A stretch of DNA of 46,611 nucleotides from Hyphochytrium catenoides (GCA_900088475.1 FLMG01002768.1:1-46611); one strand, 5' to 3'; counted from the first letter of the stretch, positions 439-41,006 are shown. Numbers and translations are program-made. The notes: generated from the letters alone by a model not told the origin.

Positions 439-2545
439 ACACAACGCAAGCAAGGCCAACCTGCCAACCTGCCAATCTGCCAACCTTCTTGGACTTGCGA
501 ATCGAATCGAATCGAGTTCGAACTGGAAAGTCAACCCATCATATCAACGACTTGGCTAAAATTGGCCAATAATATCAACGACTTGACCAAAAGTGTCCAA
601 AATTTTAGCTTTTTGGCAGCTACCATGGACCCAACAACCGGAATCCGTCAAGTTCAATCACTAATCAAGGTCAATCAAGGGCAAGGACAACTACCCAGCT
701 TGGAGCACCAAGATGGAAGCGCTCCTAGACAAACTTGATCTCTTCGACGACCATATTGAAGGAAATGAGGGTTCTTCCAAGGATCTAAAAAAGGATGTAG
801 CGCTAGAGAATGGCTGAAGGCCGATCGCAGAGCCAAGACTGAGATCATTCTCGCTCTATCAAATGACATCGTCCACATTGTTCCGCGCAAAGCCACTGCA
901 AGAGAGGCATGGATTCTGCTCCAAGAGGAGTACGAGAGCCGCAACTTAAATAACACGGTATCCTCGCTGGTTTCTTTTCTGTCGTCAAATTTCATCGAGG
1001 GAGATGACATGCGAAGACATCTCAACAGCATCACGCGCCATCGTACCGTGATTAAGGACATGATGCAGCAAGACGATTTGTTCGAGAAGCTGCACATCGC
1101 AGCGAACCTGAAGAGCCTCCCGACATCCTTCGAGTCCACAGTCAAGGCGATTCACACGTTCGCGGCCCGGGGAAAGATGAAGGCTGAGGATATCAACGAC
1201 ATCCTCATCCAAGAAATGCAGCGTAGGGATGCCATGGGCGAGGCGAAACCTGGTGCGCCCTCAGCGGCATACACCGTACAGTAGCACGACAAGGCACCAC
1301 GCACTCCGTGCCAACATTGCAGACGCAAGACTCATAGGTCAGAAGACTGCTGGGAGTTGGAGGCGAATGCACGTCATCGCCGTCCCAGCAAATGGTGATC
1401 CGTCAAAGAGAAACGAGACTTAAAGAAGTTTACCTCCTCTATCATTGCCCTTGTGCACTCTTGATGCTGATGACAGGGCTAAACTAATTAGTACACTCCA
1501 GGATTCCAACTATGGAACTGTCTCACCGTCCAATCCTATTCTCAACTGCTCACGAACGCAACAATGGACTATCGATAGTGGCGCGTCTGATCACGTCACT
1601 GGTGTAAAGAGCTGGTTTCGCAAGTATCAAGATATCGCAGCACCAGTCACGCTCTATACTGCAGACAAACGGCCTTTGTGTGCTGTCGGTAAAGGCCGGA
1701 TCGATCTCCGGCTACAAAGTGGGAACGTCTTAGCACTTACTGACGTCCTTTATGTTCTCGACTTCCCTAAACATTTGCTCTCTCAAGAACTCAAGAAGGG
1801 TGGTCATATCCTTTTTCAAGACGAAGGGAAATTCTACTATTATCTTGCTCCGGAGGACCAACAGGATTGTGGAAGTACTCCAGCGGCCCCCGCCTTTTAC
1901 ACAAATCGGTACACAGATTGGCAACCTCTTCTATTCCACTGGCACTACCATATAGCCTGTGCACCAGAAAGACGACAATTCCTTATGCACCACTTCCACC
2001 GATCAACCCACAAAGGGAGTCTCCCAGGAGTTTATGACTCTGTGGCACCAACGCTTAGGACATCTTAACGTATCGGATGTCCGTCTACCGGCTAAGTCCG
2101 CCAAGGGCATCCGACTCTCAAGCAACTCTCAAATCGACTTCTGTCAAGACTGTGCGATCGGAAAACTTACCAGACAGCGGTTTCCGAAGAAGGCCAGTGG
2201 ACAAACTACTCAACCACTGGAGCTTGTACATTCTGACGTTGGGGTTGTCAACCTGCCCAGCTTGGAAGGTTATCGTTACTATGTTGTGTTTGTCGATGAC
2301 TACTCTCGCAGAGTCTTCTTGTACTGTTTGAAGACGAAATGTGAAGTTATGGCAGCGCTGCGAACGTTCGTCAAGATGGCTGAAACACAGACTGGTCTAG
2401 GCCTAGAGCGACTTCAAACTGGTTTACGACTGAAGAAACTTCGGAGTGACAGAGGCGGCGAGTACTGCTCCGCGGAGATGAAGACTTTATGTGAGGAGAG
2501 GGGAGTCATTCATGAGCTTTCAGCCCCATACTCTCCGTCACAAAA

Positions 2546-2661
2546 NNNNNNNNNNNNNNNNNNNNNNNNNNNNNNNNNNNNNNNNNNNNNNNNNNNNNNN
2601 NNNNNNNNNNNNNNNNNNNNNNNNNNNNNNNNNNNNNNNNNNNNNNNNNNNNNNNNNNNNN
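2546..2661. other. Assembly gap (116 N) inside the integrase
   Basis: N run; flanks are collinear integrase sequence (PYSPSQ ... DIGYLRVLGC). Confidence 1.
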
Positions 2662-3066
2662 TAGCCCGCCAGATATTGGATATCTTCGCGTTCTCGGCTG
2701 TGTCTCGTTTGGTCTTGTCCCAAAGGGGGCCGCCGCAAGCTGGATCCGAAGGCCAAGACGCTCTCGTGGGTTATGGTCCTCACTAAACGCATATCGACTA
2801 TACGATTTTGGGACTCAGACTGTCACCGAGCGTCGAGATGTTGTCTTTGATGAAGCAACCGCAGCGAGTGGGACGGATCACGCTGGGTCTACTGAGAGCG
2901 CTCAGTGCTGTATGATATTTTTGAGGAGCTTGGGGAGAACTCCTCTGACAACCCCGACCCAAATGACATCCCAGGAAGACCGTGGGGAATCAATCCCAGG
3001 AAGAAGATCCCTAAATTCATTCTTTCTTAGGAACGCACCAAGCAAGTGATCAAGTCCAAGACTCCG

Positions 3067-3462: not shown

Positions 3463-3833
3463 TGTTGACGGTTCAGCTTCGACCCTTCACAATAGGGAGT
3501 TCGAGCTGCGGGGAGGTGTTGGAGTCTGAGGCACAGCTATGTGGACTACAAGCTGGCAAGGTTAACTACCCAAGTTTCAGCTCCAAACTCCCAGTAGAAG
3601 CCGAGATATGAAGCAAACGAAATGTCACTGTTTATATCTATGCCTTATGGTCAGTATCCAGGAATACCTTTCAGGACTGACTGTTCTAGACAAGGTTATC
3701 TCTATGATATCTTAGGGTTTATCAGGAATAGTTGGGATAGTCAGAATAGCTCTAGATTATGGGACCCCAGTTGGCTTATAAGTAGAGCACTCTCATCTAA
3801 CGACATTGTCCAATCATCCCGTATAATCCAACA
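3463..3833 (+). repeat. Solo LTR, family 2 long form, inserted in the copia RT
   Basis: TGTTG...CAACA ends; TSD CATCG/CATCA; removing it restores PPGANI-IGSRWVFKVK; homologous to 6459-6832. Confidence 0.92.
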
Positions 3834-5314
3834 CATCATAGGATCCCGGTGGGTCTTTAAGGTCAAGACCCACGCTGATGGGACCGTAGAAAGGTACAAG
3901 GCAAGATTAGTGACACAAGCTTTCCGGCAGAAGGAGGGAATCGATTATCAAGAAGTTTTCGCTCCGACCATCGGACATGAGTCCATTCGGTGCATCTTGT
4001 CCTTGGCCATCTTTCGACATGGAGATTCATCATATGGATATCAAGACTGCTTTCTTGCGCGGGGAGCTGGAAGAAACGGTACGATGTATATGAAGCAGCC
4101 TCTGGGATTGTCCCGTCGTGCTAGTTCTTAAGATCATATCTGCAAGCTGAAGAGGAGCATCTACGGCCTGAAGTAGAGGCCACGACAGTGGAACAAGGTG
4201 ATTGACGGTATCTGAAGAAGCATGGATTCCATCCCAGCATATGTGAGCCTTGCGTGTACATCCGAAACCGCACAGAGACAGACTCCAAGCTGCCCGAGAT
4301 CATCACTCTATCTGTAGACGACTTGCTTTTGATCGGAGAGTCAACGGATCTAGTGAAAGGCGTGAAGAAAATGCTCTCGGATAGGTTCGAGGTCACGGAC
4401 CTTGGAGAGCTCAACTATTTCCTCGGGATTAAGGTACGTCGGGACAGGACAGCAAGGACCATCACACTGTCGCAGCCAAAGTACATCAACAGCGTCCTAG
4501 AGAGGTTCAACATGGCTGACTGTCATCCAAGTCCGCTGCCAGTAGCCCCAAAGTCATACCTATCAAGGGGACGAGCATTCCACTTACGCCACAGACTCAA
4601 GAGCTCCTGAGCCAGATACCATATCGGGAAGCTGTAGGGTGCCTTATGGTCACCACCAGGCCCGACATTGGTTTTGCAGTACAATCCGTGAGCCAGCACA
4701 CATCAACGCCAAGAGTTGTGCACTGGGAGACTGTTAAGCGCATCTTTAGGTACTTGAAGGGTACAGTGGACCTAGGCTTGACTCTTGGTGGTATAAGTGC
4801 GCCATCCCTAAAGGCGTTTGCGGATGCAGACTGGGCCAATGACCGTCAGACCGGAAGTACATCTCAGGATACTACTTCACTTAGGGGAGGGAGCGTTTGT
4901 TTGGACATCGCTGAAACAGCAGCTCACTGCCTCATCCTCGACGGAGGCGGAATGTATCTCTCTTTGGGCGGCCACCAAGCACGTGGATCATATTCTGCGT
5001 CTTCTTGGTGGGGAGCTAGGATGTCCTCAGAAGGGACCGATCGAGATCTTCCAGGATAACAAGAAGAGCACGATCACGGTTTGCGAGATGGCTCGAACCA
5101 AGTCCAAGCACATCGATGTGAAGCACTGTGTTGTCCGAGAAAAGATAACATCCGGGAGTATCAAGCTGACATTTACGAAATCGTGTGATATGACGGCTGA
5201 TGTTCTGACCAAGGATCTTCCTTGGCCTCGTTTCGTAAGTTTCGTGTCGCATTGGGCGTTCGTGGTGATTCTAAGAACTCCAGTACTCGCTACATTGTTC
5301 GTACTGCGGGGGAG

Positions 5315-5579
5315 TATTGGGTGTAGGGTCCGGTAGTATGGACGGCAGTCCTTATACTGTTCAAATCTCAGCTTCTAACTCTTTCTAGTTGCTGCGATAT
5401 TGCCATTACGAGATAGCATAGTTAGCTGCTAGGATTATCTATGGCAATTAGACCACCATCTAAATGGGTGGCTGTGAGCATCCGAGTCCTCGGATGCGGA
5501 TAAGGCCGCATCTTCTGGTCCGGCCGCCACTTCATTCTAATCTCACTTTCCAATTTCCCAAGTATCCCACAAGTCAACA
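5315..5579 (+). repeat. 3' LTR of the copia element, preceded by PPT GCGGGGGAG
   Basis: Direct repeat of 150-417; polypurine tract at 5306-5314. Confidence 0.95.
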
Positions 5580-6858
5580 TTAAGAATAAGCTCCTCCAGC
5601 TTACTTTCTGCCTCTACTTTGCGTCTAAGAATTTTGTACAAAGCACCTTTGCGAGTGATCACTACAACGAATAGGAAGTACACATAGCCTTGGTAGCTAC
5701 GAGTATGGACAATGCCCACGTCGGCGCGCAGAAGTTCCAGCAGTCTTGTTGTCTTACGAGGCTGAGCGTGGTAAGGCTTCTTACGTGTTAGCTTGGCTAG
5801 GATGCAAGTCTCAGAGAGGCACGGCAGCTGACAAGCTCTATCAAGAGCTATACCTGAAGCCTGTACGGCTAGTCTTCGAGTATCTGTATGATTACGATGA
5901 TTTAGCCGTTTTGTGCTCAGGGTGATAGGCTCTTGCTTGCTCGTAGCTGCGGCTAGTCTTGGAGGAGAAGAGTCACTTTGTCCCGTACATCAGCAGTGTC
6001 CGAGGAGTAATAAACGGTTCCATTGGTCAAACCAATACGTCTCACTTGTTCTTGTGAGGTTAACTTTTCAATGTCCTTGACCACTGAAGGACTGAGAGTG
6101 TAAGCTCCATTATCTGAGGTAAACAACACTGCTTCAACAGAGGAGTCTTGGATAAATGGTCCAATAGAGAGAAGATGCTTCGGAAAGCCTGGCGCATAGA
6201 GCACATTCGGTAGGTAGAGAGGAGTGCTAGCTCCATTGGCAGCAGGGATAAGTATGCCTCTCTTTCCCACGGCAAAGACTGGTCTGTTGTCCGCGGTAAT
6301 AAAGAGAGGAAGAGGGTCAATAGGAGTAAAAGAGAGAAAGAGTGATCGATCTCCAGTAATGTGGCTGGAGCATCCGCTGTCTAGCAGCCATTTGTGGCTG
6401 CTCTGGACTTCTCTCCCCTTCGCTGCTGCTTGCTGGATAGAAGCTAGGGTAAGGATTCTGTTGGATTGTATGGGATGATTGGACAATGTCATTAGATGAG
6501 AGTGCTCTACTTATAAGCCCAACTGGGGTCCCATAATCTAGAGCTATTCTGATTATCCCAACTATTCCTAATAAACCCTAAGATATTCAGTCGTAGAGAA
6601 ATCCTTGTCCAGACAAGTTAATTCTGAAGGTATTCCGTGGTACTGACCATAAGCCATAGATATAAGCAGGGACATTTCGTTTGCTTCATATCTCGGCTTC
6701 TACTGGGAGTTTAGAGCTGAAACTTGGGTAGTTAAGCTTGGCAGGATGGAGTCCACATAGCTGTGCCTCAGACTCCAACACCTCCCCCCAGCTCAAACTC
6801 CCTTTTGTGAAGGGTCGCTTGAACATTCAACAGATTCACCGAAGTTGACAGAGGACTT
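5580..6858 (-). mobile_element. Second copia element fragment (PR, GAG-pre-IN, start of IN), interrupted by a solo LTR
   Basis: WLLDSGCSSHITGD, NVLYAPGFPKHLLSI, then CILAKLTR...LELLRADVG...GYVYFLFVV on the minus strand. Confidence 0.9.
6459..6832 (-). repeat. Solo LTR, family 2 long form
   Basis: Reverse complement of 3463-3833; perfect 5-bp TSD GATTC at 6454-6458 and 6833-6837. Confidence 0.93.
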
Positions 6859-7178
6859 TGTTAGATTATATGGGTTGATTGGACAATGTCATTAGATGAG
6901 AGTGCTCTACTTATAAGCCCAACTGGGGTCCCATAATCTAGAGCTATTCTGATTATGCCAACTATTCCTAATAAACCCTAAGACATTCAGTCGTAGAAAA
7001 TCCTGTTCAGAACAGTTAATCCTGAAGGTATTCCGGGGTACTGACCATAAGCCATAGATATAAACAGGGACATTTCGTTTGCTTCATATCTCGGCTTCTA
7101 CTGGGAGTTTAGAGCCAAACTTGGGTAGTTAAGCTTGCCAGCTTGTAGTCCACATAGCTGTGCCCTCAGACTCCAACA
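6859..7178 (-). repeat. Solo LTR, family 2 short form, no 5-bp TSD
   Basis: Direct repeat of 6459-6780; flanks GACTT and CTTCT belong to non-collinear copia fragments. Confidence 0.92.
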
Positions 7179-18144: not shown

Positions 18145-21100
18145 CTATAGGCGCACAGGCAGTCCGGATTGCTGCAGATGCTCCTTCACTTCCTGAATCT
18201 TGACTTCCTGCCTATGAAAGATACCTGCCGCCAACGCCGCATCGCAATGAGTTTCTCTGAAAGCAAGAAGTGAAGCAATCAGCTCGAGTTACACATTGGG
18301 ATAAGAATCTCAATCTCTCTCTCCAACTTTATTGCATCGGTCCTACTCCACAACCGCCCCAACCCCGAGCAAGACAGTTCTTGCTACCAAGAATCGTCCA
18401 GACACACCACCGGCCGCATCCGTCCCGAATCGCGGGCCCTTTCCATGGTTACCTACGATGCTGCACCTCTGCTGCTCCATGCATGCTCCCACACATTGCC
18501 AGCTCCTAACATATCCTTCCTCCCTCCACTCACTGCTGTCAAATATATACGAGAGCAGCAAAGTGCAAGAGCAGAAAAAGTCTTGTCCCTATCCCGTCCT
18601 GCTCCACTCTCTCTCACCAAAAGAACGCACCTAAAGACGTCTACAAAGTGCTGTGGACAACCCGCCCCACTGGAGGCGATCACTGGGATGCTGACTGCCG
18701 CCTTCACAGCCGCGAGCAGAGAGAGGTCATATCCGGCATTCTGGCCGTCCATGTCCACACAGTTCACTAGCAGCTCACCGGCACCGAGCTCCTCCACTGC
18801 TTTAGCCAAGTCGATGGCGTCAATGTCTCTTCCCTCTCTTCCTCCCTTCACTGTACATTGGTACCAGTAGTACTTTTTGCCCTCAGAGTTGGGTGAATCC
18901 GTGTGGAAGACAGTGTGACGGCCTTCCACTTCATCAGGTGAGGAGATGTAGACTCTCTTTGGGTCAATAGAGACCACCACCGCCTGTCGTCCGTAGCGCT
19001 GAGAGATCTGTTCTATGGAGGAGCTCCCGTCTGGCGAGCCTGATTGAAGAAGGTGCTCTGCTGCATAGACCGCATCGCTACCTGTAGTATTTAAGGGGAA
19101 AAGGGAGGACGACACAGCTTGAGCGTTCCAGCGATTGCTTAGGTTGGAGACTAAAGCAGCACCTAGAGGGGTGAAAGGGGTTTCTATAGCGCTTTCCGAG
19201 TTGAGAAGCTCTTTTCCCCACTATCAAGCACATTCTTTTTTACAGTCGGCTTCCTACTGTCACAGAACAATCAATCAGCTAATGGAAACTGCACGGCGAA
19301 CCCATCCCGTGCTTGTTGCTGCCCACATGATAGAGGACTGGCTTTTTTTCCTTACCGAGGGAGACCTTGTCCGCACCGGCCCTGAAGTATTGAGAGGCGA
19401 CCTCTAGGGCGCTCCAATTGTTGCCTTCTTTGTCGGTGTACGCTCGGATGCCGCCTCCTACCGTCAAAGGAACGAAAACGTTCTCTGAGGTTGCCTCTAG
19501 CACCCTCAGCATTGGAGTGTCTCCAAGAATCTCCTCTCTGAAGCTTGTGATATTAAGGAAAACAATCTCATCTGCTCCCTGAGTTTACGCCATATACAGG
19601 GGGAGAAACAGGAAGGCAGGAGTACGAGGCTATAAGAGGAGGATGGCGGGGAGCACATGCACAAGCTACGTCACTCCGTCATGCCCACTCACTCTCAATG
19701 GCCATCAGTTTCTAACAGTATCGCTCAACTACCCTTTCTCCGCTTCAACCTCCATCATACTTGCCATTGATCAATAAAATCATCAGCCTTTCCTCACCGT
19801 ACTCATTCATCGCGATCCCATTCACTTACATCTTCATAGTAACGTCGTGCCAGTTCAACAGGTTTCCCCATATTTCGCACTTGGCCCGCTCCCTCATGAC
19901 TCGTCTCTCTGACGTCGTACTGGTCCCCTTTTGTGACCACCAGATCCCCCGCATCATTCGTGCGCACATCCAAACACCTGGTACAACAAGAGATACGCAG
20001 AACCAAATAAATAAGACCAATAAAGCCGATGGAGAGGTAAAACGACTATAACGTCTAGTGAGGACGCAAGATCAGTTCCGCTTAAGTCTGGCGGAAGAAG
20101 GATAAGGGCAAAAGGTCGGGCAGCTTACGCTATGACTCTCTTGGATAAGCACGCTTGAGGAAGGATAGCGGCTGGGTTGGCAGTGGGCTTGTCTTCGGTA
20201 GACGATGAGAGGAAGCTCTGAATAATGCTGATCCCTAAGTGTCCGCTCTTCTCTGGGTGAAACTGTGTAGCCATCACATTTCCCTTCTTTACAGCACTGT
20301 GAGGAAGAAATGGCAGTGAATCATCAGGGTTAGCTTGAAAGGATACTAGGACGAAGGGGACGGATTGGACACCCGACTTCTTCTCTCTCCACCTCGGGGA
20401 GCTGCTAAGTAACCAGCCTCATCTCCGCTTCTTGATTCCCACCCCTCACAGCCCACCATCCCCAGCTTGCTTGGAAGGCCATGCTCCCTCGCACCCTGAA
20501 CATTTACCTCACAAACTCTTGCCCGTAGTTTGTGGTGGCCAAGATCCAGTCCCGGTTCTCATCAGAGGGTAGCACGCAGTAGGAGTGCACAAAGTAGACC
20601 CGGAGTTCCCCCTTCCCTTGCTCCAGTAATGGATCGAAAATGGTCGAACCCTTGTGGAGGCGGAGGCCATTCCAACCAATGTGGGGGATGGCTAGCCCAC
20701 CTGCTGGGAAGCGCTTTACAGATCCCTTTATGACACCCAAGCCCTAGACGACGAGGCCGAGTGAGATAAAGAGGTAGCAGCCGAGAATGGTGACCACCAG
20801 GTCTAGAGAACAGCACAACCACAAGACCACCAGTATACGGGAAGTGTCACAAAGAGTGGCACACAGTGAACTACTATGATGCTCCTCACCTTGACGCCAG
20901 GCGACTCCTCGCTGTCCTCAAATAATGTCTGAAGGCCCAGACATATTCCCAAGAACGGTTTATCTGCTTGGAGAAACCTGAGGGCCAGACTTAGCGTCGT
21001 TATTGCAATCCGCCTCTGAGAGACCACGGTTACCTCTTCAGCGGCTCGGCGTATCCCTTCTCTTCAAGAAAGGCCATCGTGGCGCCAAAGCTGCCAACTC

Positions 21101-22390: not shown

Positions 22391-25300
22391 ATGGACAAAG
22401 TCCAGATAAAGATAGCCCCAGATGGTATCCTGTCCAGCGCCGAAATTAGCAATGGGCTGGAACACGCCCGCCGCTCAGCCTCGGGCGCAGCCTCTGCAAT
22501 GTCAGTGGAGGATCTAATCGGGAACCTTTCCTCAAGCATGACGCACGGACTCTCCTCAGCGGAGGCCAGCAGACGGCAGTTGGCGAACGGCCATAATGAG
22601 TTCACCGTGTCAGAGGAGGTGGGTCGGCTACTTTTAAGGTTCTAGCCCGTCTACACTACTAGACTGTCTTCCAGTGCCTCATCAGTCGTTATCACTTCGC
22701 ACCCTTCCTTTCGTCCTGCCTGCATCGCCTAAGCTTTCATCGGAGCCGCTCTCGTGCTGGCTCTTCCAACAGAGCCCTGCAGAGAACACACTCATCACTT
22801 GATGTCTCCGGGTTTCTCTCGGAGTTCGCCCTCTACCTCAGTCTTGCCTTCTACTACCTCACTCGTCTCTGTCGCCTCTTTGTAGGAGCACATCGTCGTA
22901 AAGTTCCTCGAGCAGTTTAAGAACCCTCTGATTATGCTGCTGATGGGTTCCGTCTTCGTCAGCGTTCTCATGGGACATTTGGACGACGCAGTCAGCATCA
23001 CTATGGCCATTGTGATCGTGGTGACAGTCGCGTTTGTGCAGGAATATCGTTCGGAGAAGTCGATAGAAGAGCTCAGTAAGCTCGTTCCGCCCCGTTGTCA
23101 TTGTATAAGAGACGGAAGCGTGATGGACCTCTTAGCCAGAGAGCTGGTGACTGGAGATGTGATTACTTTGGCAGTGGGAGACAGGGTGCCCGCGGACTGC
23201 AGACTATTCGAGGTCTCGGAACTGCATATTGACGAGTCTTCGCTTACAGGCGAAACGGATCCCGTAGAGAAGTATGTCACCATCTTGCCCAACGGTCCTG
23301 CTCTGCCAGTGGCAGAACGGAAAAATGTCGTGTATATGGGCACCCTAGTCGTGAAGGGTAGGGCGAAGGCATTGGTGGTGGGGACAGGAGAGGCTTCAGA
23401 GTTTGGCGCTGTGTTCCACATGATGCAGGAAGTAGGAGACAGGAAGACGCCCCTACAGGAGAAGATGGATGACCTAGGAAAGCACCTCTCCATGTTCTCC
23501 TTCGGCGTGATTGCCTTCATTGGCCTAGTGGGACTTATACGAGGTCAGCCGTTGATGAAGATGTTTACAATCGGCGTGTCTTTAGCTGTTGCCGCCATTC
23601 CGGAGGGCCTTCCAATTTGTGTGACAGTCACCCTGGCTCTTGGTGTGATTCGTATGGCGAAGAAGAGTGCCATCATTAAGAAGCTCCCAGCTGTTGAGGC
23701 TCTGGGGTGCACCAACGTGGTCTGTGTGGACAAGACCGGTACTCTCACACAGAATGAAATGACTGTGACCGAAATCTATCTTCCCACGGAGGGACAGCTT
23801 GTTGAAGTGGCGGGTGGCGGCTATTTTGAAGATGGCGTGCTGCGTCTAGGCCCCGCTAGGGTGGATGCAAAGACCCACCAGGGGCTTAACCGGTTGATGC
23901 AAGTTGGAGTGCTTTGCAATCACGCCCGCTTGACGGTCAAGGAGAGAAAGCTCTTTGGACAGCCCACAGAAGGCGCCCTCTTGGCGTGCGCACGCAAAGC
24001 TGGGTTGGGTGAGCAGTTTAGAGAAGGCTTCGAGGTGACTCAAGAGATTCCTTTCAACTCCGACAGAAAGTGGATGGCCGTTCAAGCGCGACCGGCTAAT
24101 GATGCCACTCAGGCCAAGGTCTGGTACATGAAGGGTATGTTCGAGGCCATTCTTCCTCGATGCTCAACAATAGAGCTCCGTAGCGGAAGTTTGGGTCAGT
24201 TTTCGAAGCAGGACGTGGCTAAGGCAGAGGCTGAGGCCAGCCATATGGCTCAACGAGGACTGAGAGTGTTGGCATTGGCGTACGGCTCCAGCGTAGAGGA
24301 AAAGCTGACCTTTGCTGGGTTGGTGGGCATCATTGACCCTCCACGAATGGGGGTAGCGGATGCTGTGAGTGCTATGGCTTCCAGTGGAGTTCGCACTGTG
24401 ATGATTACTGGAGACTCTAGGGATACTGCCATAGCAGTGGCTCAGAAGCTGGGCATCTTTTCTCCAGGAGTCAACCTTGCACTGTCGGGGGAGGAAGTTG
24501 AACGCCTTTCTCTCGCTGACTTTGAAGAGAAAGTGTCGTTAACGACTGTCTTTTATAGGACAACGCCCAGACAGAAGTTGAAGATTGTTCAGGCTATTCA
24601 AGGAGTAGGGGAGGTAGTTGCAATGACGGGAGATGGTGTGAATGATGCCCCGGCTCTGAAGGCTTCAGACATCGGCATTGCAATGGGCCGATCTGGAACT
24701 GACGTGTCGAAAGAAGCTGCGCACATGATCCTGGTTGACGATAACTTTTCTACCATCATGGGGGCCATGGAGGAGGGGAAGTCTATCTACTATAACATCA
24801 AGAACTTCCTCCGTTTCCAGCTCTCGACTTCGGTCGCGGCGCTCACCCTTGTAACTCTCAGCACTGTCTTTGGCATGCCCACCCCGCTGAACGCTATGCA
24901 GATTTTGTGGATCAACATTATCATGGATGGACCTCCTGCACAAAGCTTAGGCGTGGAACCGGTGGACCACGATGTAATGAGAAGACCTCCACGGCGAAAA
25001 GATGACTCCATGATCACTCCTCAGCTCGTAGAAAGAGTGTTAACCTCTGCGTTCATGATTGTCTGCGGCACTTTGTACATCTTCCTCACCGAACTGGAGG
25101 ATGGGGCACTAACGCGGAGAGATACGACCATGACGTTCACAACTTTTGTCCTATTTGACATGTTCAACGCGATGAGCTGCCGCTCAGAAGGAAAGTCGAT
25201 ATTCAAGATTGGGCTCTTTTCTAACAAGCACTTCTGCTGTGCCGTAGGAGCTTCGCTGGTGAGTCTAACTTTGAGATTGTCGGGCAGTATGGGGAGGCAG

Positions 25301-25766
25301 ATTCGCCTCAGCACTCCACGGGCTATAACTTCAGCTGCTGCGCTTCTTCCGCTCTTATCATCTTTGTTGCGCTTCTTCATCAGTCACCGGTAGTATGAAG
25401 GGTTAATAGTTTTCTCCTTTTCTCTGGCTCGTCTCCACGTAAGTCGTTTCTGCTGTTCTGTTCAGCCCTTTTCGCCCTGCCTTTCCATCTTCTCTTTCCT
25501 CTAGGGAGCATCTTTCTCTCCTTACGTTCTGCCTTCATACTAACCGTTGCGACCAGGTGGGCCAGCTGCTGGTGATCTACTTCCCTCCCCTTCAGCGTGT
25601 GTTCCAGACAGAAGCGCTCACTCTCTTCGATCTCGTAAAAATTGCTGTGCTTGCCTCTTCGGTTCTTGTGGTTGATGAGTTAAGGAAGTTGAAAAAGAGC
25701 GGGAGGACCATCTCGGCAGGCTTTTACCGCCGGTTAAGACCCCGCGACCAGTCCAGTATAGTGTAG
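22391..25766 (+). CDS. PMR1: Secretory-pathway Ca2+/Mn2+ P2A ATPase (SPCA/ATP2C type); exons 22391-22618, 22886-25258, 25557-25766
   Basis: SSLTGET, AIPEGL, DKTGTLT, MITGD, GDGVNDAP and the SPCA-diagnostic WINIIMDGPPAQSLGVEP. Confidence 0.97.
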
Positions 25767-26554: not shown

Positions 26555-27484
26555 TCACCGTTGGGCCTCTTGAGTTACTGGCGGTAGGAGCCTCTTAAAG
26601 ATAAGCCGCATATGATGGTGTCTCGCCCCGCGCAAGAGCCGTAAAGTCTGTTCGTACCCCAAGTCGGCAGCTAGCCGTCCATCCACCTCGAGCAGCACAT
26701 CGCCCACTCGAATTCTGTGCTGCCTTCGCGAGCACCGAAGAGGCCGATTGATAACCCTGACCAGCGGGAGACCACGCCACTCCTTGAACTCCATGCTTGA
26801 GAAGGGTGAAGTGATAGTGTGCTCGATAAGATGACGGGAGAGGAACTGCATCCGAAGAGGAGTCTTCTCTTCTTCTCCTTTACTGTTACTCCTTATCAGC
26901 TCGGCGAGTTGCTTTGCACTGACGCCGTGCACCTGCTTCCCATTCACTGAAAGGAGCTTGTCCCCCACCGACGCTTTCAACAAGGCCGCTGGAGGGATGC
27001 CATCTGCCTTCAGCCTCGTTCTAAGGCTCCTTATATAGAAACATCCATCTGTCGAGCTTCTCTGAAGTGCCAGCCCTAGTTTCTGCTTGGGCTGCCTTAC
27101 GAAGACATAAGGTACGCCCGGTGATACTGAACTCAGTGGATCACTGAAGGAGCGGGGCCTCGGATTTATCACACTCGGTCGTGGGATGAGGGGGCGAGTG
27201 CTTTTTGGAATGGCTTGGCTTGTGCCCAAGACAAGCGACGAGGTAGTGGTCTGGAAGGGTAGTGGTGGAAGCGTAGTTAGACGGTTGTCTCTCGCAACAT
27301 CTTCTGTAGGCTCCTCGTCGGCAATGGGCTGGAGGGCCTTTTCAGGCCCTACCCGCTCCTTTAAGGGAGAGAAGTACTGGGTGTAACCTATGGCTAAAGG
27401 CTCAAGCTTCAGAGCTTCCCAACGCAAACCTCTCAGCTGCTCCTCCTGTTCTTGCTGCTGATTGTCTATTCCTGCCGCCGCCAT
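26555..27484 (-). CDS. Tandem PDZ-domain protein
   Basis: KLGLAL...VGDKLLSVNGKQV...LAELIR and IRVGDVLLEVDG...TLRLLR are PDZ signatures; Pro/Ser-rich N-terminus. Extra 3' exons near 26030-26450 are possible. Confidence 0.75.
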   Translation of the reverse strand: MAAAGIDNQQQEQEEQLRGLRWEALKLEPLAIGYTQYFSPLKERVGPEKALQPIADEEPTEDVARDNRLTTLPPLPFQTTTSSLVLGTSQAIPKSTRPLIPRPSVINPRPRSFSDPLSSVSPGVPYVFVRQPKQKLGLALQRSSTDGCFYIRSLRTRLKADGIPPAALLKASVGDKLLSVNGKQVHGVSAKQLAELIRSNSKGEEEKTPLRMQFLSRHLIEHTITSPFSSMEFKEWRGLPLVRVINRPLRCSRRQHRIRVGDVLLEVDGRLAADLGYEQTLRLLRGARHHHMRLIFKRLLPPVTQEAQR

Positions 27485-28195
27485 TGTGTCACAATCTAAA
27501 GTCAACTTTGCTCTGTCGTCTCCTTCTTTCGAGACCGATAGTCTTCATGGCACTTCTGAGAGACACTTCCTATCCTCTCAAGTGGCCCCCGCCTGAGCAC
27601 TGGCGCTATCTTCCATCCATGAAGATGTGAAATAGCGGATGCAGCCTGGCTGACAGCTGTTCCCTCCGCTGCTGAGTACATAGATTATGTCCCAGCTCCA
27701 TCGGTCGGCCAAAGGCTGCGGAACAGAGCCTCTCAGCTCTCGATGAGCTCTAACGCTTCAACGCACCGGTTCCCTACCTCGCCCTTTATTATTATCCAGT
27801 GCGCCAGCCGCCAGCGCCATCATAAAAACGGATCAGACGCACCCGAAACGCCACCATGTTAATTTCGGGAAAGATGGTAAAGCGTTAAGAACCAAAAGAA
27901 AATGATCCGCCTGAGATAATCAGGAATCAGTTATCTAGAGACAAAGCTTCAGATAGGGTTTATCGAGGGAGTGACCAGGAACTGCTGACAATGGATTCCT
28001 AGAGCTCAATCTCCTCGCTGAGGTACGCCTCCATGCAGATCTTTGCAGGTCCAAGATACGCAGATCGAGCCTACTTCTTCAGACTTAGATTGTACTATGC
28101 GCGCGCGGGAACCATGACTTAGGGCCTTGGAGCTCTGACATCAATCTACTTCTAGTTCTCACAGTGCAGAACGAATTATAAGACGCCATTGTCTG

Positions 28196-30560
28196 ATGGA
28201 TCCGGAACTGGAAGCAGATGAGGAAGAGTCACAGATGCTCGAGGCTCCAGCGAAGGTGGGGAAGGAGCAGGGCAAAGTTCTAATCACCTCAAAGCGACTC
28301 ATGTGGCAACCCTCCATTGCCACCGAATCTGCCGTGGCAAGCGTTGACTGTCCGTGGACCGCAGTGAAGAGTAAGTCGAAACTGAGCTTCTGCAGTCCAA
28401 CGTGAAAGGACCAATTAACCTCCCGTTGACTTTAGGCCATCAAGTTAGCGCGAACAGCACTGCTCGCGCGATGATGAAGCTCAACATGAAGGATCCAAAA
28501 GGCAAGCATGACACTCTTTGCCGCTCCACTTACTTCTTTAAGTATGCTCCGCTATTCGAGCAGTTTCCTCTCTCCTTCGCTTCGCCGGTTCTTCTGTCTC
28601 GATCTCTTTGCACTACTTTCGCATCGCTGCTGTGCTTTGTCTCATAAATTTGTCTTGTCTTTCCCTGCCTTCATCGTTGTCTGTGGTCTCATGCAAGGCT
28701 CTAACGTCTTTGCGACTCCCTCGCAGCCTCTTCAGTCGTCATTGAGTTCCTAGGCAACACTCCGGACGAGGCGAGAGCGAGCCGGAACCAGGCGAAAGAC
28801 CTGATCTCCATGCTTCTCGCGGGACTAAAGAAGCTCGAATCTGACGGAAACAAGAATAACGATGCCTCAGCTGGTGGCTCTTCCTCCTCTTCTTCCCCTT
28901 CTAGGCCCTCAGCAGGCGCTACGAAGCCCTTGTTGGCTAAGCGGCCGTCTCTCGTAGAGAGTAGGATACCCATGGACATTCAGACACGTGAAGCTCTTCT
29001 TGCCTCTGACCCCGTGCTAAAGCAACAACACGACGAGATGGTGGGCAGCGGGTTAGTGAACGTTGAGGAGTTCTGGGCCACAAGACAGGGTCTCCTACTG
29101 AATGAGATTGGCAAGCGGCAGAAGACAGGTCCAGCCAATGCCTTTCTCTCTGATATTCGTCCCGAGGAAGAGCCGAACTCCAACAGAGTGAAGTACAAGC
29201 TAAATGTCCACACGGTGCAGCAAATCTTCGCCCAGTATCCGGCAGTCCACCTGGCCTACAAGGACCTCGTGCCAGACAAGATGACAGAGAAGGACTTCTG
29301 GTACAAATACTTCCAGTCAAAGTATTTTCATAGAGACAGAGGCAAGGCCACCGGCAAGGCAGATGCCGCCTCGCTTGACATCAGTGATGACCTCTTCGCC
29401 AAGTATGATGGCAAAGCAGAAAAAGATAAAGAGGGAAAGGCTGCGGATGTGAGAGGAAAAGTGGACCGGCTGATGGATCTCATCATCACAGAAGACGGCA
29501 GGCTTAGAAAGAGCACCCTGCAGGTCAATGAAGAGACTGTCCCGGAGACTCAGGCAGCTGCTAGTGAAGCTGCGACGATGGTCTTGGCGAAGTTTAATCG
29601 TCATGCACAAATTGTGCTGGATCCGTTATTGCACGAGGGTGATCAACCGCGAAAGGGTCCTAATTCTGCTTCAGCTGCGGCTTCTATCAGGGCCGCCGTG
29701 GAGCTCGAAGATTTGGAGAAGAAGTCTGAAGAAGAGTTCGCCCCACTCAAGATTCAGGATGAGAGGATGTACTTCGATGTGAGAAGCGAGGCGCTTCCTC
29801 ACAAAGAGACTGTCAGTCATCCAGCGACGTCAGGTTAGAGCCCATTTTGCCAAGCAAGAAGACTCTTGGTCGACCTCCTCTCTCTTTCCCTTCTCCTGTT
29901 TTAGCTGTGCGCCACCTAATGATGACCGCCTGTTGCTCCTAGCCTCTGTATTGCCTCGCCCGCCAACTCTAGTCTCTCCACTGTCTTGACGTCCATCTCT
30001 AGACTGCGTCACCCTAACGGCTTCGTTTTGTCCCTTGTCATCCACCAGCTGACGTTCAGAAGGCAATGACGCTAGACCTGAAGCTCAGTGCGGCGTTTCC
30101 TAATCCGCGTAGCTCGGATAAGGTCTTTGCAGACATCATGAGTAAGGCAGCGCCGGCGGGAGCGGAGAGCGGACTTGGGTTGGGAGGAGGTGGAGGTGAT
30201 TCTCTCTCAAGTATCCCGCCTGAATTCAAGACCAAGATTTTCTCATATTTCCACTCCACGGGAGAGCTTCTCAGGCATTTTTGGGCCTTCTGCTCTCTCC
30301 CTCCGTCCGCCGAGACAGAGTCAAAGCTTGACCGCATTGTGGCGCGGATAAGCTCCAAATATGAGGAGATAGAGACGTTGAGAAGGAATCTTCCTGCTCA
30401 GCAGAAGAGTCGTTTGGGGCCGGTACTGAAACCTCTCCTAGACCAGCTTAACAACGCCATTGTGGAGAAGGCAGGGAGACAGAAGAGGAGGGAAGAGAGG
30501 AGAAGAGCCTTGCAGATGAAAGGACTTAAAGGGACCCTCAAGGTTGCATCAGGGCGGTGA
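28196..30560 (+). CDS. GTF2H1: TFIIH subunit p62/Tfb1; exons ~28196-28370, 28436-28501, 28727-29833, 30049-30560
   Basis: N-terminal PH-like region, two BSD domains (EEFWATR; IFAQYPAV...MTEKDFWYKYFQSKYFH), C-terminal ELLRHFW. Confidence 0.92.
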
Positions 30561-33679: not shown

Positions 33680-35537
33680 CTATTTCCTCTCCGCCTTGTT
33701 GATTTCTTCGAGCACGATTCTATCGGCAATAAAATCAGCCAGAATGTCCGCACCATGATCGCTTGAGCCTACAGCACAGCACAAAGTATGAGACAGGATG
33801 CTTAGCAACAGAACCAACAGAGCAAATATGCCAAAAGGCAGCAGCATAGAGAGAATGGGGAAGCGAGCCCGAGAGCGAGGAAGAGAAAGGGACGACGTGC
33901 AGGAGGGACCCCGCGGGAAGGACAAGAGTGAACTGTGACAACAACCCAAAACGCGGCACGAGAGAAATCGTGGTAAAGGTCGGAAGAGGGATGATGAAAG
34001 AGGAATATTCAGCAGAAGAGCAATGGTAGAAGAGGGTACAAAATTGTGAAATGCCCCTGTGTATGACAGAGAGACAGGGGAGAGAAATAGTGAGATGGAA
34101 GAGTAACACTTCTGAGAGGAAACTAGGGCACGAGTATCGGCAGACTGAAGCAGACGTGGAGTTAAAGAGCTAAGAGAGTCAGATAAAAAGGTTGCGTTTC
34201 AGCAGACCTTTCTGTCCCTTCTGGTTAAGGGACAGCTCAGCAAAGACCAACTTGGCGGCTCGGGAGTTGGCCTCTTCGCTAAGATCTAGGGGCAAAGACA
34301 GCATTGGTGGCAAGCAGACCGTTGAGTGGACAGCTCCGGAGTAACGCAAAAAACTCCGGAGTAACGCAAAAATACTCAACGGAAGAAGGAGGTTAAGCAA
34401 GTTTCGACCAAGTTGGTGAAGAGTTCCCGGACAAAGAAGGCCCTCTGATCCCTGTTGTGCCTCTGTCTCTTCTCTCACCAGGAGGCAGTGCCATATTCTG
34501 TGGTCGGGGAGCTTGAGGAGAGACCGAAGGCTGCGCGCGAGGCGTCGGCGCTGGCGCCCCGTTCCGTCGATTATCATATTTTCCACTGGTAGCTGAGGTA
34601 GACGAAAGAGGAATCGAAAGAACGCTCGGGTGAGTCATAGCAAGACCAAGATAGAAGGACAAGGCCTTGAGGAGGACAGAGTGATAGTAGCGCAGGGCTA
34701 GCCATACAAAGAGAGAAGCAATCGGGTTATCAATAAGGTACTCTTGAGAGTCAAGCAGTAGAAGGGAAGCCATTAAATGGATTGGAGAGAGTTAAAGTGA
34801 GATAGAGGCAAGAAAGACGATCGGACAGTGACAAAGGAAAAACTCCCCCCACCATTGAGAACCGCCGATGTTGGTCCTGGAGCTCCTGTCATGACTGAGG
34901 TCGACTGCAGCTCATACTTAATCATGTTCAGTTCTTCCACACCGCGGCGGAGCTCCTGCTGAAGCTGTAGGAGACAGAACCAAAGCCATAGGAGGTCAAT
35001 TGCCAACCAAAGCCATAGGAGTCAATTGCCAACCAAAGCCATAGGAGGTCAATTGCCAGGAAGAGTCAATGCATATAATGCGGACCAGTCTAAGGGCGGG
35101 AGACGTGGATAGAAGGAGCTTTGGAGAGAGGGAGAGACAAGTGTCTTGCTCGACCTGATAGAACTCGCTGTCCTGGTTCATTATGTGAAGCTTGGCTCTG
35201 CTGCGCTGTATGAAACCGAGGCTCTTTCCCAGCACCCATCCCAGGCCCTGCGCTACCTTTGGCACTTCTCGACGGCCTACCACCAACAACAGTGAAGAGT
35301 TGCCGTTAACAGAAGCGACCTTGGAAACACAGAAATGCAGGGGGCGGTAGCGAAGAGGTTTATGGGATGCGGACGGATAAAACAGCGAAAGGCGGCAAGG
35401 TAGGAGCGATGCAGCATAAAGAAGAACAACACTGGTTAAGTCGTTGACATTTGCCCTCTCTGACTTAAAGGTCGCGGCTCACCCATCAAGATGCCAGCAC
35501 CGCCAGCCACAAGCAGCAGCTTGATGATTGACGTCAT
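33680..35537 (-). CDS. Nucleus-encoded mitochondrial TatB-like protein, 189 aa, 6 exons
   Basis: Exons 35537-35483, 35276-35155, 34964-34853, 34592-34479, 34285-34208 and 33768-33680 total 570 nt in frame, all GT-AG. N-terminal short TM, G hinge, amphipathic helix (GRREVPKVAQGLGWVLGKSLGFI), ELRRGVEELNMIKYEL, C-terminal GADIL. Confidence 0.75.
34978..35058. repeat. 27-bp minisatellite x3 in intron 2 of the TatB-like gene
   Basis: aaccaaagccataggaggtcaattgcc x3 (middle copy 1 nt shorter). Confidence 0.9.
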
Positions 35538-36390: not shown

Positions 36391-39300
36391 TCAGGCTACG
36401 ATGGCTGCCGGCGCCTGCTCTGCCAGTCCAGCTGTAATGCGCTTGTTGATGTAAATTGTGAGGAGCTTCATCTGAGGCGTTGTGAGATCGGAGAGGAAGG
36501 CCATAAGCCCATCTCCCATTAGCAGATATAATTCCACCAAAGAGAACACGGCAGCCTTCCGCACGCTGGCACTCGAATGGTTAAAAGCCTGGGAACCCGG
36601 ACAAGATATAAGTAAGGAAGTCCCAGCTATGGTTCTCTCAGGGGAAAGGCCACGCCGTAAACAAGTGTGTCAACAAAGGAAAAGTACTATGAGCGCAATT
36701 ACAAGAGGCACATCAAAGACAGGCTTGGAAGAGAGCAGCGGCGATCACCCTGGCCACCGAAGCGTAAGCAGGACGGAAATAAAAACAAGAATATAGATCA
36801 TTCCTTTGAAGCGGCGGACGATGTGGCGTAGACAATAGACACAAGTACAGAGCCGAATCTTACCCTCTTCAGCAAGGATAAGATAGAGTTAGAGCTAGAC
36901 AGAGCGCTGAATAGGCTGTCTAGCGAGAGTCTCTTAAGAGCTGCAGTGCACGAACTGAGAGCGACTTGTAGAACCGTAGGATCCTCGTCAAATGACGTCT
37001 GCAGAATAAGCTAATAGATGGACATATGGATGTCGTGGGAAGAGTATCAAACATAGATGGACATGCAACAGCGCAGTGGAGAGTTAGATTCCATAGCATA
37101 AGACGAATTGAAAAATGAAAGAGATGAGAGTATGAAAGGCGGAAGGCTCACCTCAATACTCCTCTCTGGGTCAACGACAGCCACTACTCTTTCCACCGTG
37201 CGCTGTGCGGCGTGGCTCTCCTATCGTTATACGCACGTAAGAAAAGAAAAAGAAGGGGGGCGGAGGTCCAGAGGCAGTATTTAAAAGGACCATGGAATAG
37301 GCTAAAGAGTCTGGGTAATTTTGCTCCATTCAGCGACGGAAAGCGGTGATACGACCGAGAAAAGAAGATTGACAAAGTAACAATAGAGCAGAATTTACCA
37401 GGTCGGGTCCAGTGCGAATGACTTCAACCAGTCTAGAGAGAGTTGGCTCTAGAAATCCATTGAATAGCTCGCCCTGCCTTTCTGTCATCACTTCGATGGT
37501 TTTGAGCGCAGACATAACCATGGAGGACTACAGATTGGAGAAAGCCATGAACAAGTGTGGATAAACGGCCAGAGAATAGAAATATATTAGCTCACGAAGA
37601 AGAATCAGCATCAAGACAAAAAGCTGACCTCTGACAGTGTGGCTAGCAGGACAAGCAGATTCTGTTCGAAGTTAGCGTTCCAATATTGGTGGTCCGCCTC
37701 TAAGGACATCCTGAGAATCTGATCAACAGATAGGGAGGAGTAGAAAGGTAAGTCTTCAAGAACTCTGGTCACAATAAGATCCACGCACAGGTGGAACCAT
37801 TACCTGTTGGATATCATCCTCTGTTTTCGCATGGGACGACATTTCCCTTGTCAAAAGGGAGACGCCGTCGGTAAGAGTGTCGTGAACGGTGGACTCCCAG
37901 TGACCGTCTCGCTTCTTCTCGTTGGCCAGAGCAGCTTCGTCTGATACCTCTGCTGCTCTTGCTTCTTCAACTCGAGTGTCCTCTACGTGCATCTTGACAC
38001 CACCCTCTACCTTCCCAGCACCTTCGTTTTGCACTAAACCCTCATCCCGTCTTTCTCTTGTAGCAGGAAGGGACGATTGGCCGATAGTACTAAGAGCACG
38101 CAGAAGGGACTCTCCAACATGCGGAGGCAGCTGACATAGAATCGTTGTTAAGTCAGGAATAGTTCGCACAAGACTGGCTAGCACTGTCTGCGACACCCTG
38201 CGTAGCTGCAGCTGCTGGCTCTCTAAGCACGGGGAGAGCTTGAGAAGGATATGACGTGCGAGAGAGGATGGAAAGGAGACGGGGTTGGACAGAGAGGGAA
38301 GAAGATGGAGGAGATACTCCAGAGCCGCCACCTTTTGCTTTACGGGTTGTGCGGGCTCAAAGCATTTGCTTGCGAGAATGGTAATCAATGATATCGGTGG
38401 TGTGGTCACTTTCATAGCGTTCAAGACGCTGTTAGCGAGAGTACGGAACGATTCCTTCCCGTCCACCAACTTTGTGAAGAGCTGTTCAACAGAAAGAGAA
38501 TAGGGAGCATTCACGTAAGCGACACAAGATAACCATTAGGCGGAAAACTGAGGCATAAGAGACGTACCTTTGGTAGGAGAGAACTAAGTTTGGCCTCTAT
38601 ATGGCGCACGAGGAGATTTGTCGAAGCAGACATTGAGAGGCCGAGAAGAGCTTGGTAGGACACCTTGGAGTTAGGATCCAGAATGTGCTCGTCAAAACAT
38701 CCAACAAGCTTTTCCGCAAAGCCACGAATCTCCTGTTCTGCTTGAGGCTCGCCAAGGAGTCTATTAATCCCTTCGAAAGCCTGTAGTCGCGTAGCCCAGA
38801 GATCACTCTGAGCCTGAAGAAGGAGACTTTGTAGCGTCGGGAGGACGGAATTAGGGAGAGAAGAGCTATGAGAAGAGCTCTCGGTCGACTGCTCTAAGCC
38901 CAGATGTGGGATATTCTCTTTTTGCAAAGAAATATCCGCTTCCTTTATGACTGGGTGGATGACAACCCTCTTAGCCCCACTGTTGGCGCGGACTGTCGTA
39001 TGGCAGCTTTCGAATCCTCTTCCAGCGTGAGAGTTGCTACCGGACATAGATTGAAGAGGCTCATTAGGGGCATGATTTTCTAGTCCTGTCCGCACTACCC
39101 TCTGAGGACCCGAGAGGTGAAGATGGCTGTCTGAAGGGTGATGGTTGGTCGTTTTGTGTGAAGGGTCGAGGCTTAATGTGATTCTCATTGGCCCATTTCT
39201 TGATTTCCGAAGAGCGACAGGAGCTTCTCGACCGTCAGGATCTTCCACTTTCGGGCCAACTTCCTGACGTCGAATGGTCGACGGTTGGATGACGTCGTTT

Positions 39301-41006
39301 GGCTGCTTTGCAGGATGACCTATACTCTCCACAACCGGCCGTAAAGGATGCGACTCAGGACCAAACGCGGCTCGCACCGGTTGCGGTGCAACAGGCTTTG
39401 GCATTCGCGGCGCCGATTGACATGAAGGAGGAAGAGAAGGCTGGGCAGAGGTCTCTTCCTGCACGCATTGCAAGTTCTTCCTTTCTTCTTGGAGGTAGCG
39501 TTGTGTGGTCGCATCCAACCGCCCCAACAAAGCCGCGCCTTGAGTCGGAAATCTCTCCATGAAAGTCCAGAACCATTGCCTCCCGGCAGTCCTGACATCC
39601 GCCATTGCGTCAGCTATACTCAACTCTATTACGTGCACGAGCTGATCCACGTAGCGCTCAAGCAATGGCTTAGACCAGCGCTTGCATATTAGATTCAAGA
39701 AGCCTACTGCATTTCGTCTGAGAATCTGATTACGGCTCTTTGCTCCTTCTATTAGCTTGGACGCAATGCGAGGATATCCACCAGGCGTCGCACAAATAAC
39801 CCTTTTTACAGCCGCCAGAGCTGACGAGGAAACCACCTGGATAGTCACCACTGAAGCCTTCAAAAGTGCCGGAAAAAATAGATCAGCGACAGAGTCGAAA
39901 GACTCTCCCAGGCTCTCGGCTAGGACTGCAATGCATTGGCACCCCTCTTTGACGATAGAAGAGCGGAGATCAGTGATCTGTTCTACCAGAAGGTCCTGCA
40001 TTCTCCGGAGACTGGGGAGAAAGGACTCAAAACGAGGACTATTTCCCCGCGCTATACGCTGAAGACGCTTCATCGCCTCGATTCTCTTCACCCAATCTAC
40101 AGACACTGGGAGCTGTTTCTTAATCTCTTCGATCTCCTTCTGAAGCTCCTTCTCCGTCGCCACGAAGACAGGGAGAATGTCAGGAGAAGTCGGCTCAGGA
40201 GAAGGTGTAGGGGAGACTTCTGTAGTGCCCTGGCGCTGAGTGTTACCCCGCTGCTTAGGTCGTGGTCTCGTCTCTTCCATGCCCCTCCATTCCTCTCTAC
40301 GGGATGTTGCCCGGAGTAGCTCGGGACTTGAGGGACTTTCTACCGTGGTTGGCCCAGGGCTCCCGGTCTCGCCCTCCATAATAGCTCGAAGATGCCCTGG
40401 CCGAATAGATTTAGCCCTTAGCTTATCTACGAAAGCCGGCCCCATGTACTGGTAGATGTTCCGTAACGTGTCAGTAGCTACCGCTCTGACCTGCGGTTGC
40501 GAATCATCAAGCAGCTTAATGAGCAATTCCACATATTCATTGCCCACGAACTGCACCGAGTGGAATTTCCCTATGGCTGTAGAGACGCAGTTGGCTGCTT
40601 GCTCGCGCACTCTCCAATTTTTGTGCGCGAATGAGGGCCGAAGTTTTTCCAACACGGGCGTAGGGGATAGTGCAGTCATTAGCTCTAAGACGACGCTATT
40701 CGCCTTCTCTCTGACTGGAAGCTTGGCATCGCCAAACTTCTCAATGAGGGCAGGCAATAGAGCGCTGACATAGTAACGAATGCTTTCTTTGGTGCTTGAG
40801 ACTGTGGTCGCAAGAGCTTCTAGGCAAAGGAGGCATACTTTAACATTGTTGTCCCGCAAGCCCTGGACCAGGCAGTCAACAACTTCTCCCAAATCGTATT
40901 CCAGCAGGTCCTTAGCATTATCCTCTAAGGCGGTTTTGAGCGCTGCATAGCCTTGAAGTCGTCTTTTGCTGTCCTTTGACTGTGCCTCGCGGAGGGCACT
41001 CTCCAT
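36391..41006 (-). CDS. CLASP: CLIP-associating protein (TOG/HEAT microtubule regulator), multi-exon
   Basis: TOG1 (HKNWRVRE), TOG2/CLASP_N (DWVKRIEAM, DLRSSIVKEGC, DAMADVR), further HEAT repeats, C-terminal SVRKAAVFSLVELY...QMKLLTIYINK. Confidence 0.93.

Follow-up and report, generated by a model that had tools for sequence, protein, structure and literature searches.

Mitochondrial TatB and related systems

Where mitochondria have a Tat system, it is a relic of their bacterial ancestor; such systems have been lost repeatedly. Insertion of the Rieske protein into complex III depends on TatBC in plants and on Bcs1 in yeast, the latter being a protein whose N-terminal anchor is followed by a basic internal targeting helix. 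The plastid proteins Hcf106 (TatB) and Tha4 (TatA) carry N-terminal transit peptides and function in the thylakoid.

In Arabidopsis, mTatB (232 aa) and mTatC have been reported to act jointly on the complex III Rieske subunit (PMC13456617). A TatA/B protein of 170 aa was noted in Ectocarpus in 2011 (PMC3097184), and in 2018 nuclear-encoded mitochondrial TatB was described in oomycetes, diatoms, Ectocarpus and the cryptophyte Guillardia (Petru et al. 2018, PMC6251230). The eukaryotic TatB set of the latter study, which was found with a plant TatB query, clusters apart from bacterial TatB. Mitochondrial TatB was present in every oomycete examined and in ochrophytes, a transmembrane Glu and a TatB-specific Pro were marked as conserved, and all TatB-positive species also had mitochondrial tatC (PMC6251230). 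In yeast, and probably in other opisthokonts, the folded Rieske domain is moved by the AAA-ATPase Bcs1, which for the Rieske protein is the functional analogue of mitochondrial TatBC (PMC6251230). Taking into account the stramenopile TatB published in 2018 (PMC6251230) and the Ectocarpus protein of 2011 (PMC3097184), a preliminary description of the locus analysed here, which had called mitochondrial TatB-containing translocases poorly characterised outside plants, was overstated in this respect.

The locus occupies positions 33680-35537 on the minus strand of a 46,611-nucleotide stretch of Hyphochytrium catenoides DNA (GCA_900088475.1 FLMG01002768.1:1-46611; referred to below as the window). 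Most probably a real, spliced nuclear gene lies here, encoding a single-pass membrane protein of 189 residues, or of 151 residues without exon 4. Like nuclear-encoded mitochondrial TatB (At5g43680 and others), the predicted product is a small nuclear-encoded protein in which an N-terminal helix of TatA/B type leads through a hinge into a long helical tail. A possible likeness to At5g43680 in the second helix and the C-terminal motif had been put forward in the preliminary description. Its 189 aa fall between the 170 aa of the Ectocarpus protein and the 232 aa of the Arabidopsis protein, and its host lineage is stramenopile, as it is for the stramenopile members of the group. It differs from eukaryotic TatB as described (PMC6251230) by having Lys and Arg at the columns of the Glu and the hinge Pro of bacterial TatB, and, unlike the TatB-positive species of that study, in which tatC is in the mitochondrial DNA, H. 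catenoides has a mitochondrial DNA annotated without TatC. From bacterial TatB and TatA (PF02416) it is set apart by five introns and by the lack of an exon-level match at the Pfam and NCBIfam thresholds. Nuclear encoding and TatA/B type are shared with Hcf106 and Tha4, but, in contrast to these plastid proteins, the model has no presequence; no relic plastid genome was found in H. catenoides (PMC5795050). The N-terminal anchor and the basic helix after the anchor resemble Bcs1, whereas the AAA domain of Bcs1 is absent from the model protein and there is no sequence relation between the two.

The predicted six-exon gene

The predicted model consists of six minus-strand exons with a total length of 570 nt, corresponding to 189 codons and a TAG stop, with no internal stops. 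The in-frame splicing of six exons to 189 aa had been proposed in the preliminary description, and its coordinates and the peptide pieces quoted there were confirmed in the sequence. In the direction of transcription the features are:

35483..35537, minus strand, exon 1, 55 nt: ATG, 18 codons and base 1 of the hinge Gly codon
35277..35482, minus strand, intron 1, 206 nt: phase 1, GT..AG, 62% pyrimidine
35155..35276, minus strand, exon 2, 122 nt: hinge Gly, post-hinge RREVP, basic helix
34965..35154, minus strand, intron 2, 190 nt: GT..AG, donor GTCGAG
34853..34964, minus strand, exon 3, 112 nt: charged helical stretch leading into a Gly/Pro/Ser/Thr linker
34593..34852, minus strand, intron 3, 260 nt: GT..AG, 69% pyrimidine, donor GTGGGG
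34479..34592, minus strand, exon 4, 114 nt: low-complexity, rich in Pro/Ala/Ser; the weakest-supported exon
34286..34478, minus strand, intron 4, 193 nt: GT..AG
34208..34285, minus strand, exon 5, 78 nt: short helical segment
33769..34207, minus strand, intron 5, 439 nt: GT..AG, 71% pyrimidine, donor GTCTGC
33680..33768, minus strand, exon 6, 89 nt including TAG at 33680-33682: acidic C-terminal helix

Introns 1-5 (206, 190, 260, 193 and 439 nt) all have GT..AG ends and pyrimidine-rich 3' ends. Their range of 190-439 nt and median of 206 nt agree with the published mean intron length of 208 nt in Hyphochytrium catenoides (PMC5795050). The donor of exon 1 is GTGAGC, that of exon 4 is GTGAGA, and the acceptor of exon 4 is CCTCAG. 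Donors 2, 3 and 5 (GTCGAG, GTGGGG and GTCTGC) are unlike the GTGAG (GTRAG type) shared by donors 1 and 4. The hinge Gly codon is split G|GC by intron 1, and reading through this intron leads to a stop 14 codons on; if intron 5 is retained, the frame stops 9 codons later. Because its length is 114 nt, exon 4 could be skipped with the frame kept. Intron 2 contains 3.0 near-perfect copies of a 27-nt tandem repeat (34978-35058), and 2.1 near-perfect copies of a 20-nt tandem repeat are located within intron 4 (34334-34377).

An in-frame TGA (35585-35583) lies upstream of the ATG with no intervening ATG, and exon 1 therefore adds no presequence. This agrees with the earlier claim that the protein has no N-terminal presequence, with the reservation that a further upstream exon is possible since AG sites exist between the TGA and the ATG. 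An alternative first exon was considered in the 67-codon open frame upstream of exon 2, but this frame contains no Met, and its hydrophobic run is no longer than 6 residues.

Upstream of the locus, in the same orientation, is a CLASP/TOG gene (36391-41006, minus strand) of at least four exons, two of which (831 and 252 aa) gave matches to CLASP_N and XMAP215_CLASP_TOG. About 850 bp separate the end of its last exon from the TatB-like ATG. We take the open reading frame 36391-36564 to resemble a typical CLASP C-terminal end, and because the last recognisable exon of CLASP ends near 36391, the TatB-like gene is regarded as separate from it. The possibility that the six exons are 3' exons of the CLASP gene was rejected, exon 1 having its own ATG after an in-frame stop. 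A profile scan of six-frame peptides revealed no other Tat-like peptide between the TatB-like gene and CLASP.

The coding signal was assessed with codon usage trained on the long exons of the window, the training frames including open frames with His_biosynth, PDZ and BSD domains. The best codon score was that of the model frame in five of the six exons, exon 4 being neutral. Relative to random stop-free segments of the window, the following p values were obtained for exons 1 to 6: 0.037, 0.148, 0.092, 0.749, 0.019 and 0.066, which combine to a Fisher p of 0.004. The score of exon 4 was -0.6 bits (p = 0.75), hence this exon has no coding signal.

TatA/TatB likeness of the N-terminal exons

All homology searches were performed on single exons or on open frames around them. 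Neither Pfam nor NCBIfam gave a match for any exon or surrounding open frame, and Rfam gave none over the locus. When exon 2 was used as query, phmmer against the PDB returned ribosomal protein eL33 as the sole match (E = 1.2), no match was obtained by BLASTP against E. coli TatA and TatB, and metagenome scans with exon 2 peptides were blank. An exhaustive protein search with the 41 residues of exon 2 gave one match, a tandem-repeat junk protein that was discarded, and word searches with exon 2 (candidates of 53-170 aa) and exon 5 (74-236 aa) yielded no candidates. With E. coli TatB as query, a word search retrieved enterobacterial TatB and nothing else. By our estimate E = 0.001 among 1.8 billion proteins corresponds, for a 41-residue query, to roughly 45 bits; a query of this length has little power, and therefore the blank searches rule out close relatives only.

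In the ESM Atlas, the top three clusters and all ten best family-bearing matches of exon 2 alone were PF02416 (TatA_B_E), with a score of 0.83 that is under the 0.9 line and makes this result a lead only. Exon 3, used as a control, gave generic coiled-coil clusters only, unrelated to TatA_B_E. No Tat-like or other recognisable family feature was detected in exons 3-6 (Pfam for exons 3-6, the Atlas for exon 3). A resemblance of exon 5 to an ATP synthase b-like stalk was considered and discarded on the grounds that there is no Pfam match and that the Pro-rich exon 4 is unsuited to a rigid stalk. A Rossmann GxGxxG motif was also rejected, as the Gly spacing misfits and the protein is too short.

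For profile comparison, the tat operons of E. coli and of plasmids belonging to six genera were collected, together with 80 alphaproteobacterial tatB loci. The resulting TatA/B profile comprised 27 proteobacterial N-termini (16 non-redundant TatB and 11 TatA). On this profile the open frame of exon 2 ranked second among 2127 six-frame peptides with 3.3 bits, a score that derives partly from four intron-encoded residues. The exact exon peptides reached 2.6 and 0.9 bits in unanchored HMMER searches; with hhalign, P was 0.07 for exon 2 and 0.2 for the open frame containing exon 1. The free HMMER and hhalign alignments, which were run on open frames around the exons including a few intron-encoded residues, share one register and meet at column 21, each being weak alone.

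In an anchored test the exon 1/2 junction was fixed on the hinge Gly column, and each exon was scored on its own, ungapped. Exon 1 scored 7.3 bits (p = 1.4e-4 relative to six-frame fragments and 0.007 relative to shuffled versions of itself); of 802 window 18-mers with the same hydrophobicity, only 2 reach this value. Residues 1-14 of exon 2 scored 10.8 bits, and 7.0 bits when the Gly was left out (p = 7e-4). With the register shifted, exon 2 reached no more than -4.2 bits (-5 to +5) and exon 1 no more than 0.4 bits (-2 to +5). For a register suggested by the sequence itself, and for a finding picked for its Tat-like look, the composition-controlled p values of the two exons combine to about 4e-5 to 6e-5 (Fisher), and to 1e-3 with a TatB-only profile. 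Exon 1 alone was closer to the TatA profile (6.6 bits) than to the TatB profile (2.9 bits), whereas the post-hinge helix, scored over 35 residues, gave +5.3 bits with TatB and -7.2 bits with TatA. The TatA/B identity proposed in the preliminary description is partly supported, by the anchored fit of exons 1 and 2 in the junction register only, and finds no counterpart in the exon-by-exon Pfam and NCBIfam searches.

The predicted product of exon 1 is an N-terminal transmembrane segment in which 12 hydrophobic or small residues lead from Lys6 to Gly19, just as many as lie between Glu8 and Gly21 in the aligned bacterial TatB. Gly19 falls on profile column 21, where the probability of Gly is 0.94, and represents the hinge Gly. 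In the post-hinge stretch G-R-R-E-V-P the second Pro is kept (+2.4 to +4.0 bits). The GPxxLP of the TatB subfamily is not present in full, its hinge Pro being replaced by Arg20, which scores -2.2 bits on the TatB profile. The overall spacing (a polar residue, 12 hydrophobic residues, Gly, three residues, Val-Pro, Lys, and Leu-Gly 12 residues past the hinge) agrees with that of E. coli and alphaproteobacterial TatB, where a polar residue and 12 hydrophobic residues precede Gly, three residues, Leu or Val with Pro, and a Gly at +12.

The column of position 8 holds Lys6, a residue that is polar but basic and is absent from all 27 profile sequences. The position is occupied by Gln or His in the TatA sequences fetched and by Glu in TatB; in the bacterial TatB aligned here Glu8 and Pro22 are invariant, and Lys6 and Arg20 stand in their places. 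It was shown before that the position-8 side chain touches the polar cluster of TatC and that the TatB substitution E8A destabilises TatB-TatC binding (PMC5577447). The first 31 residues encoded by exon 2 contain 7 Lys and Arg against 1 Asp and Glu. For the post-hinge helix, with a net charge of +6, the best 18-residue hydrophobic moment was 0.51 (p = 0.2 against shuffles). Of the family traits named in the preliminary description (a short N-terminal transmembrane segment, a Gly hinge and an amphipathic helix), the first two are seen here, and the amphipathicity of the post-hinge helix is not significant.

Interpretation, the TatC partner and the neighbourhood

These observations make it fairly probable that the locus encodes, in a real spliced gene, a diverged TatA/B-family protein of TatB type in the mitochondrial inner membrane. 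On sequence grounds, the first ~32 residues appear to be homologous to the TatA/TatB family, and both the length of the protein and the Pro five residues past the hinge Gly suggest a TatB type. A mitochondrial location is suggested by the absence of a plastid and by the positive charge after the anchor.

The N-terminus could also belong to an unrelated N-anchored membrane protein, such as a small assembly factor or a protein with an ER or outer-membrane signal anchor, that is encoded by a real gene and shows the Gly-x4-Pro likeness by chance. We consider this unlikely, though it has the largest share among the alternatives. It would account for the absence of significant matches in the curated profile libraries and the PDB, exon by exon, for the marginal unanchored TatA/B scores (2.6 and 0.9 bits), for the missing canonical Glu and hinge Pro, for exons 3-6 having no recognisable Tat-like feature, and for H. 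catenoides having no annotated TatC partner. What it leaves to coincidence is that exons 1 and 2, scored separately, fit TatA/B only in the abutting register (Fisher p about 4e-5), and that the Atlas neighbours of exon 2 are all TatA_B_E and those of the control exon 3 are not; moreover, no alternative family surfaced.

Still less likely is that the model itself is wrong, either because the exons are chance open frames or because only the first two (or three) exons are real, with a 3' part that is spliced otherwise or ends early. Free choice of GT and AG often allows some in-frame model, three donors are unlike the GTGAG seen at donors 1 and 4, a coding signal is missing from exon 4, the p values of single exons are modest, and the searches with exons 2 and 5 found no relative. 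Against a wrong model stand the combined codon bias (p = 0.004, with the model frame best in five of six exons), the typical intron sizes and pyrimidine tracts, and the observation that removal of intron 1 restores a TatA/B-like hinge right at the split Gly codon. In addition, if the model were wrong, the 2.7 kb that follow the end of CLASP near 36391 would be left without an explanation.

If the locus encodes a TatB-type protein, then, by analogy with bacterial, plant and stramenopile TatB, the short N-terminal helix would lie in the mitochondrial inner membrane with the N-terminus toward the intermembrane space, and the basic helix that follows the hinge would be on the matrix face. In the canonical system TatC is the binding partner of this helix, and the two together pass the folded Rieske iron-sulfur domain across the membrane; the topology, the TatC partner and the Rieske substrate of the H. 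catenoides protein are proposed by this analogy.

The mitochondrial DNA of H. catenoides (LT578416) was described as being without rps7 and TatC (PMC5795050 supplement, Fig. S2 text). The same assembly has six unassigned ORFs and could not be circularised (PMC5795050 supplement); as it is not closed, gene absences in it are provisional. No TatC partner was found in the window. With TatC missing from the published annotation, the earlier conclusion that this organism retains a TatB-containing mitochondrial translocase is not established as far as a working TatBC pair is concerned. Given Lys in place of Glu, Arg in place of Pro and no annotated tatC, the TatB-like protein may work with a diverged or undetected TatC, or its Tat role may have been lost or changed. 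A more specific and rather doubtful proposal is that a TatB-family protein has outlived the loss of mitochondrial tatC ('TatB-only'), either with a new Tat-independent role or with a diverged TatC among the six unassigned ORFs. Such a 'TatB-only' state is absent from the three arrangements distinguished by Petru et al. 2018 (PMC6251230).

As stramenopile nuclear TatB is already on record, one further copy would be a modest addition. It is the combination of a diverged TatB-like gene, with Lys instead of Glu and Arg instead of Pro, and a published mitochondrial DNA without tatC that deserves attention: if both are true, H. catenoides catches the translocase while it is being dismantled or reused, and if tatC is merely missing from an assembly that was not closed, the gene gives a reason to search for it.

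Elsewhere in the window, an open exon of 819 codons (22934-25393, plus strand) with E1-E2_ATPase and Cation_ATPase_C matches belongs to a P-type cation ATPase. Open frames at 18453-19115 (minus strand), 26555-27505 (minus strand) and 28810-29838 (plus strand), with His_biosynth, PDZ and BSD domains, look like ordinary neighbour genes. Remains of a Copia-type retroelement are located at 1445-2786 (plus strand), where a Pol beta-barrel, a gag-pre-integrase and an integrase core are found in two overlapping frames, and they adjoin an LTR family at 3463-7178.
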